Below are positions 22,178 through 31,602 of a DNA stretch of 64,000 nucleotides, in pieces (the first letter of the stretch is position 1; the number at the start of each line of letters is the position of its first letter). The notes under the pieces are model-generated. The model ran no database searches, was not told the DNA's origin, and worked only from the letters and a program-made list of their open reading frames with translations. The position numbers and the translations under genes were made by a program. The stretch spans positions 13,129,801-13,193,800 of the forward strand of contig OZ037767.1 in NCBI GenBank assembly GCA_964035545.1, written 5' to 3'. The stretch comes from Bugula neritina (Eukaryota; Animalia; Bryozoa).

Positions 22178-25100
22178 ATGTACAGAGTGCATCACAACTA
22201 CGACCCAGACAAGAGAGATGAACACACTGATATTGTGCTCAGGATTGGAGACATTGTGACCAATGTAGAGTATTTAGGTATGTGAATCAATGTAATAATT
22301 ATATATTATGCATGTGTTGAGGTTATAATGTAGTACTGGAGGGTGTTTATTACTCACCAACTAAATATGTATTGCATTGTTTGTAGTTAATAAGTAGTTA
22401 TATTGGGTAAAGCAATGGGAGACAAGGATTTTGTGTTGGAAATATGAAAGCGTAAAATAATTTTTAAAAATTCATTTTTTGTGAAATAAAAACATCCTTT
22501 GCTTTGTGTTAAAGCCTTTAGTCATGATTTTTTTATTATCACATCTAACATATAAGAGAATACAGTGATACTATAAAATACCGATTCTATGAATGTAATG
22601 CTGTGATAGGCTGTTCTCTAGTCACATGATATGCAGATTCTGTGTAATGCTTGTTGTAAAATGTTCTTGTAGATAATGGGTGGTCAATAGGTTATAATGT
22701 GTCCAGAGAAAATGCTGGAATTTTTCCACGAAGAAATATATATCCAGTTCAGGAAGACATTTCATCAATTTTCCCTCCTGCGAGACCTAAGAATAGGCCT
22801 ATATATCTGGAGGAGAGAATAGAAGACTACGTACAGAGTGATGAGATTGGTAAAGCATTGCTCTGTATTCAGCACAATGTAATTGTATTCTATTTCGGCT
22901 GGTTTTCAAATTATTTTCAATTAATCATATTAAAAAATAGCAGAATAGTTGTTAACAAGACTACCAGTTTTTAATGAAATAGGTTTGATATTTAAATGTT
23001 TGAATAGGATATTTTATTATTCAGCAAACTGATCGAAGCATTTAAAAAGAATTATGTTCCGTATTTCAATATTAAACATGGTGCTGAAGTGTTATTACAT
23101 AAATGAAATTTGAAGCCTTGTAAGCAAAAAGATTGAAATAAATTGTTCTTTTTTAACACAGTTTTTATTGATTTTTCTTTGGTCGCTCAAACTGACTATA
23201 ACTAGTTTTAGATTCTCAAACAAATAGAACATAGTATTGACGTCTTTTATCTTTGCAAGGTATAAACTGCAACTGTTCAATTAGTTAACTTAGTAATTGT
23301 TTGAATTGTGAAAGTATTGTAAAACAATTTATACTTAACATACATTAAACATTGTTTAACCAGTTTTATTAAATCTTTCAGTGAACTGGTGGCGGGTGGT
23401 GGACAGAGAAGCCCTAAAACAAGCCTATTATCAAGTAGTACACACAGACAGACATCAATATCGGATATTAAAAGGATTTGTTGGCTTTGTTGCTGGCATT
23501 ATTTTAGGCAAGTATTGAAGCCATTACTTTGGGAGTTGTCCTGTTTAAGCTTTTTTACAATACTTCAACATGTGCCAGTGTTAATTGTAAATAATGTATT
23601 TCTAATTTTGAATTTAATTCTGACAAAACGCAAACTTGCTGTTTAAAATGTTATCCAATGTTTTCTAAGTTGCAAAATTGTATGACATAAAGGCGACAAA
23701 TTCTAATTGTATAATAAAGTCTTCAAAAGCGTATAGATAAGATCAATAACATGACGAAGTAATCTTACAGTAATCTTACTAAAATATAGATAAGCTAAAA
23801 AACTCATGCAAGTTTATAATCGCTATTCCTGTGAGAAACCCCTGTTGGAAAGGGTTTTTATTAGAATGGGCTAAGGACTTGTTTAAATGAGGCACAGGAG
23901 CAATTATGACTGGATGCTCTTTTTAATATCACCAATGGCCTTTGTCGGGGTTCGAACCCATGATTCCGTGTTCACAAAGCAAACGCTTTAACCCCTAGAC
24001 CACGGCTGCTCCCTATAAAATATAGATAAGCTAGGTTCTTAATAAATGTAAAGAGAATGTTATGATGGCTGTTAATAAGTATAATAAAAAAGGGGCACCA
24101 CCTATTAAAAAAAAGCAGTAATTGTGTTTTAATTACAAATGCTATTAATAATGGTACTACTTCAGGAATAGTATACTCAACATACAAAGCCTAACAGCTT
24201 CACCTGTTTAGTTTGTATTGCAGGTAAATTGTATTCTATGTGAATTGTAATGCAGGTAATGTGTATTGTAGGTGTGTTAGCATACATTGGTCTTCAGTTT
24301 GCCTTGGAATATCCTCCGACAGCGGCAGCAGTTATTGCCTCAGTCATAGGTTTTATTCTGGTCATCGGCCTTTCCTTCAGTACTAAATGTAGGGCTGTTG
24401 TCTGTTTGTGTATCCCTACTTTAACTACTAGATCAGGTAGGTGTGTGTATATATATATATATATATATATATCATATATATATATATATATATATATATA
24501 TATATATATATATATATATATATATATATATATATATATATCATATATATCATATAATCATATACAGATCAATTTGTATCAAGCTTCCCATCTCAGTTGA
24601 AACATTTTATTTGCTTTCATCCCCATAGGAAGGCTGATGTTCTCTACATTTGCTGCTGCACTACTTCTCACTGGACCAATGACAAACATCACCAACAATG
24701 CCTCACAGCTTGCATTGGTATCAAACTGTGCCGGAGCTTTATTGTCCAATCAGACACAGTTTCTCAGAGACCTTGCAAAGGAGCCGTATGATGAAATTAT
24801 CGATGGTAAATTGAATTGTAATGTTGAAAGCAGTTCGGTTGAACAGAGGTGTATTCTTTCTATTTTTGAACTGTGTGCAGGATACAAATCTCTTTTTGTA
24901 GTTATCAGTCCTTTTTACAGTACCATGCTGCCTTGTAAACCATCAGTGCATAAAGGAATTTTACATGTTTTTGCCTCTTACGTAAGCTTTAAAAATGTGT
25001 TGATAAACATTTGCGGCTTTCGATCAAATTATGTGTTGTGCCGAAAGTTTACATAAAAAAACTCACGCAAGTTTATAGTCATCATCCTTGTTAGAAACAC

Positions 25101-31100: not shown

Positions 31101-31602
31101 TATTCTCAAATTAAACCTTCATTTATTACACGTACCTCACAAATACTGCCACATCCCGGTTTGATTGTGGCTGGTCACATCGGTCTTTAATAGAAATTAC
31201 GCAGCAAATTTCTCATAATTTTGCTACATTCTACATTTTCAATATATTTCAAGCCAACAAAGTTTAGAATGCAAAATTTAGGTCCAATATTGTGCTGCAT
31301 CTTTAGCAGATTTTATCAGTCACTAATATTTGTAACTCTGCTTGCAGGAATGCTTCAACATTACAGTAAACAAAGTGTGCCCATGCAATCCCGAGATTAG
31401 CCTCACTTACGATCATGTGACCGAGTCAGACTTTGAAGACGACGTCCAAGAGCAGATTGTCGGCCAGTATTATGCTTACGCAGAAAATTTCACAACAGGA
31501 AGTCATGGAAGTGACTTTGACGAAGAGACGGCAATGAATCATCAAAATACGCCTCAGCGACATAGCGCAGCCATGTTTTTCAGACAGCCAAGCTTACTGT
31601 AG
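22178..31602 (+). CDS. DC-STAMP domain (DCST1/2, Sneaky/SPE-42-like) multipass membrane protein with C-terminal Cys-rich RING and N-terminal SH3 domain, about 820 aa
   Basis: Fourteen phase-consistent exons totalling 2463 nt: 22178-22277, 22673-22849, 23382-23507 (GC donor), 24272-24436, 24629-24805, 25398-25534, 25868-26025, 26676-26860, 27207-27449, 27981-28112, 28591-28845, 29557-29729, 30179-30358, 31348-31602. Family motifs: GR.M.....LLLTGPMTNI..N......C...L.NQT; YLRKY....HDNMYIT..F...D..R...GKTSLLPL; RLRHTMAGYFYPEREKDRIKFLHRKLLRRR; CYIC..CPDC..FCDEC..CPC. Confidence 0.88.
23802..24013 (-). mobile_element. tRNA-derived SINE, copy 3, with an 18-bp target-site duplication
   Basis: Intact B box (GGGTTCGAACCCC). 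The TSD taaaatatagataagcta lies at 23780-23797 and 24016-24033. Confidence 0.92.
24446..24552. repeat. Interrupted (TA)n microsatellite
   Basis: Visible run in a DCST intron. Confidence 0.95.
25061..25267 (-). mobile_element. tRNA-derived SINE, copy 4
   Basis: Same body (ctaaggacttg...gcacag.agcaattatgactggatgctct); head slightly truncated. Confidence 0.85.
26250..26665. repeat. About 20-bp minisatellite (TAGCACTGTATAGCATATCT)n filling the 3' part of DCST intron 7
   Basis: About 20 degenerate tandem units ending just before the acceptor at 26675. Confidence 0.92.

Follow-up and report, generated by a model that had tools for sequence, protein, structure and literature searches.

In this study, we analyzed a 64,000-nucleotide stretch of the genome of the bryozoan Bugula neritina (contig OZ037767.1, positions 13,129,801 to 13,193,800, forward strand). 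This stretch is referred to below as the window, and positions are counted from its first letter. The gene located between positions 22178 and 31602 is likely to be a single expressed gene whose product, about 820 residues long, is an SPE-42/Sneaky/DCST1-2-type protein in which an SH3 domain is followed by a proline motif, six transmembrane (TM) segments, a DC_STAMP domain, and a RING-like finger. As read from its sequence, the window was animal DNA with short exons, and 14 coding exons with a total of about 820 codons were placed via RNA joints, splice signals, and reading frames (Table 1). An earlier reading of the window that was made from the letters alone (the sequence-only reading) had proposed that two upstream exons, 22178 to 22277 and 22673 to 22849, encode an SH3 domain and are spliced to the exons of a DC-STAMP-family gene. 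Both exons were present as described and were joined to one another in RNA contigs, and the same contigs joined the SH3-like exons to the DC-STAMP-family exons. Exons 1 to 9 belong to one spliced, expressed gene of B. neritina.

Thirteen RNA-like runs from four studies each held 5 to 7% of the sampled words of positions 22100 to 24500. Four of the runs (X1, X3, X4, and X5, with X3 to X5 representing three studies) were aligned on positions 22000 to 27900. Run X1 was recorded as RNA-Seq, and the run type of X3 to X13 was a guess ("RNA?"). The three junctions that the sequence-only reading had singled out for checking (22277/22673, 22849/23382, and 23507/24272) were all found in contigs of X3, X4, and X5, and X1 gave partial support for them. 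Specifically, the raw joint at the first junction ran from 22274 to 22670, with the cut shifted by +3 to a GT..AG intron, and the raw joint at the second ran from 22848 to 23381, with the cut shifted by +1 to a GT..AG intron. The raw joint at the third junction ran from 23504 to 24269, had four ambiguous letters, and corresponded to a GC..AG intron. The 5' part of the contigs consisted of the pieces 22075 to 22274, 22670 to 22848, 23381 to 23504, 24269 to 24432, and 24627 to 24804, and the 3' part consisted of exon 6 and the pieces 25871 to 26025, 26676 to 26859, and 27206 to 27456. Single contigs of X3 and X5 reached position 27456; the first X4 contig ended at 24804. Because the RNA was joined at all three junctions, the coding sequence of the DC-STAMP-family gene does begin with exons 1 and 2.

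Coverage between the exons agreed with splicing. The depth of the intron bins was zero in X3 to X5. In X1, the depth was 21 in intron 1 versus 313 in the exons, and a low intron depth beside a high exon depth is as expected for pre-mRNA. The contigs also extended at least 290 to 336 nucleotides further in the 5' direction than position 22075, which points to a long 5' untranslated region (UTR) of no less than about 440 nucleotides.

The reading frame across these junctions was continuous. Exon 1 opens with the ATG at 22178, and the in-frame TAA that had been reported 9 nucleotides upstream is located at 22169 to 22171. Exon 1 ends with TTA G before its gt donor, in phase 1 and inside the n-Src loop, and exon 2 starts with AT AAT GGG after its ag acceptor. 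The split codon (G plus AT) specifies Asp, and exons 1 and 2 together read as an SH3-like stretch of 59 residues. Exon 2 ends with ATT G before its gt donor, again in phase 1, and exon 3 starts in phase 1 and completes a Val codon. The claims that this join is in phase 1 and that exon 3 has no Met of its own were thus borne out. Exon 3 enters the first hydrophobic segment, and the next Met is found only after TM2.

An open frame also runs from exon 2 into the following intron up to position 22974. This frame is what would be expected if exons 1 and 2 either made up a small SH3 gene of their own that ends at 22974 or were part of a conjoined read-through transcript, with the DCST protein normally made from another start; in addition, contigs drop rare variants and so allow for a minor isoform of this type. 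We consider this arrangement very improbable, since position 22849 was joined to 23382 in all four aligned runs, the bins of the intron after exon 2 had zero depth in X3 to X5, and no SH3 exons ending at 22974 as a separate gene were seen in any of the four runs. The read-through tail was not conserved between B. neritina and a relative (P0004 versus P0005), as would be the case if the sequence beyond the exon 2 donor were intronic. The missing Met in exon 3 and the position of the next one argue the same way, as do the exon order, which was kept in three further taxa, and the intron phase, which was kept in one of these (L004).

The contigs were 93 to 95% identical to the window. They bear the same organism label as the genome, yet they differed by 5 to 7% even in exons. 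The window stretch was single copy in the genome, and no retrocopy was found. Taken together, the level of identity and the single genomic copy indicate that the contigs represent another, closely related lineage within the species complex and not a paralogue. The RNA contigs therefore probably derive from a sibling lineage and not from the sequenced animal, and we take the divergence to fit cryptic sibling species within B. neritina. All nine of the listed differences in exon 2 and the single one in exon 3 fell at third codon positions, and the 103 nucleotides before the ATG contained eight substitutions and a 6-nucleotide insertion in the contigs. This combination of third-position differences in the exons and dense changes upstream is the pattern predicted by a coding frame that starts at 22178.

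The divergence of the contigs and the guessed run type of X3 to X13 would also fit spliced contigs that represent a processed, intronless DNA copy in the sampled lineage, and not RNA. We judge this to be extremely improbable. Run X1 was recorded as RNA-Seq and had low coverage of intron 1 beside high coverage of the exons, X3 to X5 covered the exons, no intron, and elsewhere only repeats, and the genome was single copy for this stretch, with no retrocopy. Moreover, a retrocopy would itself prove that a spliced mRNA had existed.

The search for relatives with exon-sized queries identified metagenome and SRA contigs of three other taxa. In L055, exons 1 to 4 were found in order at 61 to 70% identity to the window, and exons 2 to 4 were present in L056/L057, with L056 being close to L055. 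In L004/L005, exons 1 to 4 were colinear with the window at 56 to 68% identity. Intron phases were examined in L004, and both the positions and the phases of its introns matched those of the window. The same Met is present in L004, as the first one to follow an in-frame stop that lies 129 nucleotides upstream. The donor of intron 3 (23508 to 24271), which is GC in the window and was confirmed by RNA, is GT in L004. Separate short contigs from the same sample series held DC_STAMP exons. Word searches with exon 2, either as a single sequence or aligned, returned only the species itself and one relative, and a scan of JGI metagenomes with exon 2 gave no match. A search of representative proteins with exon 11 returned two exon-sized relatives and one spurious repeat protein but no full-length DCST protein; a word search with exon-sized queries cannot reach full-length proteins.

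To assign the N-terminal module, the exon 1 and exon 2 halves were scored singly. Against a local SH3 hidden Markov model (HMM) built from 24 complete SH3_1 domains of the same genome, exon 1 scored 11.7 to 12.2 bits on the N-terminal half and ranked first among 1,556 six-frame window pieces. When profiles of three or four taxa were compared with the 24-domain alignment using hhalign, exon 1 aligned to SH3 columns 5 to 33 (P of 6e-6) and exon 2 to columns 36 to 60 (P of 1e-3). The two matches were colinear and complementary, and the two leftover columns fit the split codon. In the PDB profile search, seven of the eight matches to exon 1 were to PI3K p85alpha, in or beside its SH3 domain (E of 0.018 to 0.12), and the best of them spanned chain residues 12 to 31. 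The only three matches to exon 2 were all vinexin/sorbin SH3 domains, at residues 40 to 65 (E of 0.9 to 1.4). SH3 structures were reached only with three- and four-sequence profiles. The language-model look-alikes of exon 1 in the Atlas were SH3 clusters (0.87, 0.81, and 0.76); the same search with the exon 2 half returned nothing usable.

The residues that were invariant across the taxa included His6 and Tyr8 in the ALYDY-like strand and the G-D in strand b; the Trp and the turn G-I-F-P-R-R-N were invariant as well. Like canonical SH3 domains, the module has an ALYDY-like strand, an acidic RT loop, a G-D-hydrophobic strand, a GW, and a G-hydrophobic-F-P-x-x-N stretch. Unlike them, it has a single Trp where they have WW, its first ALYDY Tyr is replaced by His and its last Tyr by Ile or Val, its RT loop is three residues longer, and its half-domains fall below Pfam thresholds. 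Many SH3_1 matches in the genome start or stop at profile positions 19 to 30, which is also where the SH3 of the window gene is interrupted. These breaks would fit an intron that recurs in the n-Src loop region, a feature that the window gene would share with many SH3 genes of the same genome. The closest canonical domains were the PI3K p85alpha SH3 and the third SH3 of the vinexin/sorbin family. The resemblance to nebulin/LASP-type SH3 domains that had been suggested earlier was not upheld, since exon 1 had the p85 SH3 as its best structure and exon 2 had vinexin/sorbin SH3 domains. A nebulin/LASP type was also considered among the domains of the genome itself, and the LASP/nebulin-like SH3 ranked only fourth among the closest.

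A number of observations weigh against an RNA-supported gene with an N-terminal SH3 domain. On the side of the gene model, the contigs were 5 to 7% diverged, so splicing was seen in a very close lineage and not in the sequenced individual, and the contigs allow for minor isoforms that lack the SH3. In addition, beyond the start of exon 10, which was seen as a loose contig end, exons 10 to 14 were placed from splice signals, frame, colinear Pfam matches, and relatives, not from RNA. On the side of the domain, no Pfam SH3 model matched either half-exon at E values up to 10, and a whole-genome PF00018 scan returned 107 SH3 pieces that did not include exons 1 and 2. Exon 2 alone was not significant against the local SH3 HMM (rank 82 of 1,556), and PDB searches with the single sequence of either half, or with two sequences, gave no match. 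The SH3 scores come from half-exons only and not from the joined domain, and the last Tyr of the binding surface (P-x-N-Y) is replaced by Ile or Val in four taxa.

Such results could mean that the module encoded by exons 1 and 2 has degenerated from an SH3 to a relic, or is some small beta domain, and that it does not bind proline ligands but serves only as a folded cap or in trafficking or endoplasmic reticulum export. The half-exons without a Pfam SH3 match, the weak score of exon 2, and the loss of the P-x-N-Y Tyr in all four taxa are in line with this idea. However, the other ligand-contact positions (the ALYDY His and Tyr, the first Trp, and the Pro and Asn of the 3-10 turn) were invariant, SH3 domains were the best solved-structure matches for both halves, and a conserved proline/basic motif adjoins the module. 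We therefore consider a relic or a small beta domain unlikely. The SH3 identity proposed in the sequence-only reading held in that both halves matched SH3 profiles and structures at the right positions, but not in that no Pfam SH3 model reached its threshold. As judged from these profile and structure matches, the N-terminus very likely adopts an SH3 fold.

The sequence that directly follows the SH3 domain contains the motif IFPPxxPKxRP, which was invariant in the four taxa and as conserved as the SH3 core. A later motif, R-x-E-x-Y-V-x-S-D, was likewise invariant. IFPPxxPKxRP, a proline/basic motif, resembles an SH3 ligand, although one of no clear binding class, and is a candidate ligand of this SH3.

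The gene belongs to the DC-STAMP-like proteins (PF07782), as had been proposed. When the profile, which has a curated cutoff of 25 bits, was scored per exon, the end of exon 9 and exons 10, 11, and 12 scored 13.8, 21.7, 27.6, and 47.4 bits, respectively. The matches on exons 9 to 12 were colinear and spanned the whole profile, and two of them were above the Pfam cutoff. A PDB search with exon 12 identified no solved relative. Per-exon Kyte-Doolittle scans showed six hydrophobic segments, of which TM3 was weak (1.59). The N-terminus has no signal peptide and no cysteines, and basic residues precede TM1. Between TM3 and TM4, exons 7 and 8 encode eight ectodomain cysteines that are 8 to 12 residues apart, and six N-glycosylation sequons are found in exons 5 to 9. 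The tail has the spacing C-x2-C-x11-C-x2-C-x4-C-x2-C-x8-C-x-C across exons 13 and 14, which is the C4C4 spacing described for SPE-42, in agreement with the RING assignment of the sequence-only reading. No Pfam zinc-finger model matched the exon 13 half or the exon 14 half taken singly.

The genome contains three DC_STAMP genes, all on C3, the chromosome piece to which the window belongs. At the other two loci (C3:13911664-13917544 and C3:4979647-4981562), exons 4, 5, 9, 10, and 12 were recognized at 28 to 50% identity to the window gene. No homologues of exons 1 to 3 were found at either locus, which indicates that the SH3 cassette belongs to one paralogue.

Table 1. Features of the SH3/DC_STAMP gene in the window.
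Feature	Position	Strand	Basis
5' UTR (part covered by RNA contigs)	22075..22177	+	RNA contigs
Coding exon 1: start codon and N-terminal half of SH3 (beta-a, RT loop, beta-b)	22178..22277	+	Sequence, RNA, SH3 profiles
Coding exon 2, whole; GT donor at 22850	22673..22849	+	Sequence, RNA
First part of exon 2: C-terminal half of SH3, NGW..G....G.FP..N	22673..22749	+	RNA, SH3 profiles
Proline/basic motif IFPPxxPKxRP, directly after SH3	22768..22800	+	Invariant in four taxa
Coding exon 3: juxtamembrane segment, start of TM1; GC donor at 23508	23382..23507	+	RNA
Coding exon 4: end of TM1, TM2	24272..24436	+	RNA, hydropathy
Coding exon 5: weaker TM3, start of ectodomain, 3 N-glycosylation sequons	24629..24805	+	RNA, hydropathy
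Coding exon 6: ectodomain	25398..25534	+	RNA
Coding exon 7: ectodomain, 5 Cys at 10-12-residue spacing	25868..26025	+	RNA
Coding exon 8: ectodomain, 3 further spaced Cys	26676..26860	+	RNA
Coding exon 9: TM4; exon end is DC_STAMP positions 1-21	27207..27449	+	RNA, Pfam
Coding exon 10: DC_STAMP positions 22-61, start of TM5	27981..28112	+	Pfam; start seen where the RNA contigs end loosely, at 27456
Coding exon 11: DC_STAMP positions 70-147	28591..28845	+	Pfam, 27.6 bits
Coding exon 12: TM6, DC_STAMP positions 149-191	29557..29729	+	Pfam, 47.4 bits
Coding exon 13: tail, predicted to be cytosolic, start of RING-like C4C4 finger (30284), first six Cys	30179..30358	+	Splice signals and frame alone define the boundaries
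Coding exon 14: last three finger Cys (to 31386), acidic tail; stop codon TAG at 31600-31602	31348..31602	+	Boundary from splice signal and frame only

Several other features of the window were observed in and around this gene. A dispersed repeat was present in two copies, at 23800 to 24015 in intron 3 and at 25050 to 25300 in intron 5. Its end appeared tRNA-like by eye, and ARAGORN called no tRNA. In the RNA-like runs, the summed contig depth of the repeat was hundreds of times the exon depth, and many chimeric joints linked the copies; the repeat is probably an abundant, transcribed element that resembles a short interspersed nuclear element. Intron 7 contains a 20-bp minisatellite of about 20 copies (26250 to 26665), and intron 4 contains a (TA)53 run (24448 to 24556). 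A convergent neighboring gene on the minus strand, at 33236 to 38582, matched the PolyA_pol head domain (PF01743, 32.9 bits) and, from this match, looks like a member of the tRNA nucleotidyltransferase or poly(A) polymerase family. A repetitive open frame rich in Cys, Val, and Leu, at about 37365 to 37864, overlaps an intron of this neighboring gene.

The architecture of the window gene downstream of its SH3 exons is that of a known family. SPE-42 and its homologues cross the membrane six times and have both termini in the cytosol, a DC-STAMP domain, and a C4C4 RING (PMC3053230; PMC8989947), and the conserved cysteines in the TM3-TM4 loop of SPE-42 are about 9 to 13 residues apart (PMC3053230). 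The window gene is like SPE-42 and SPE-49 of Caenorhabditis elegans, Sneaky of Drosophila, and DCST1/DCST2 of vertebrates in its six hydrophobic segments, its Cys-spaced TM3-TM4 loop, the DC_STAMP domain around its last TM segments, and its putative C-terminal C4C4 RING-like finger, and the first spacings of the finger (x2, x11-15, x2, x4) agree with the SPE-42 residue numbers (PMC3053230). On the strength of these sequence features, the rest of the protein is SPE-42/DCST-like, matched to the published SPE-42 description. The gene shares its Pfam domain and its multi-pass membrane architecture with DC-STAMP and OC-STAMP as well, which act in osteoclast and giant-cell fusion. These are vertebrate proteins in clades separate from DCST1/2 (PMC8989947). 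The spaced-Cys loop and the eight-Cys tail match the description of SPE-42 (PMC3053230).

The N-terminal SH3 and the conserved proline/basic motif set the window gene apart from SPE-42, Sneaky, and DCST1/2 as these have been described. In our search, which covered papers but neither domain-architecture databases nor full-length metazoan proteins, no DC-STAMP-family protein was reported to have an SH3, and the word "SH3" is absent from the paper on the SPE-42 RING (PMC3053230). The domain arrangement of the window protein has a parallel outside the family, if only by analogy. The yeast osmosensor Sho1 is a multi-pass membrane protein whose cytosolic SH3 recruits a proline-motif partner to the membrane. 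Sho1 is like the window protein in being a multi-pass protein with its own SH3, and it differs in its unrelated membrane core, its C-terminal SH3, and its pathway.

The proposed order of the protein from the N- to the C-terminus is an SH3 of about 59 residues, IFPPxxPKxRP, TM1 to TM3, a Cys-ladder ectodomain, DC_STAMP around TM4 to TM6, and the C4C4 finger. Six membrane segments, together with a RING that is taken to be cytosolic, predict that the N-terminus, and hence the SH3, faces the cytosol. We suggest that one bryozoan-lineage DCST paralogue may have acquired its new 5' end by taking up an SH3 cassette of two exons. The SH3 might then dock proline-rich partners (for example, regulators of actin or endocytosis), the proline motif of the protein itself, either in trans (self-association) or in cis (autoinhibition), or both. 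Docking of this kind would couple a membrane protein of a fertilization/fusion family to cytosolic machinery. DCST/SPE-42 family proteins, which other animals require for fertilization, function there in sperm-egg interaction and fusion (PMC8989947; PMC3053230).

A more specific version of this proposal is that the SH3 and IFPPxxPKxRP form a built-in ligand/receptor pair, which could mediate self-association or act as a closed/open switch, and which would recruit actin or endocytic regulators at the sperm-egg contact as a bryozoan-specific feature. Bryozoan sperm fuse with oocytes unusually early. We regard this version as speculative and, on balance, doubtful. If it were true, a DCST-family fertilization protein would for the first time be linked directly and physically to the cytosolic fusion machinery.

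DCST1/2, SPE-42/49, and Sneaky are among the few fertilization factors that are common to worms, flies, fish, and mammals. To our knowledge, their molecular action is unknown, and the RING-like finger has been the sole cytosolic clue. If the architecture described here were common in other phyla, the finding would shrink to an annotation note. As it stands, the window gene is a clean, RNA-supported case of a multi-pass membrane protein that probably gained a signaling domain via two new 5' exons, in a phylum, Bryozoa, for which functional genomics is very scarce. As a natural variant with a recognizable adaptor domain on the side predicted to be cytosolic, it offers a testable handle on the intracellular signaling of DCST-type proteins, and the partners of its SH3 could be asked for in the SH3-less DCST proteins of other animals.

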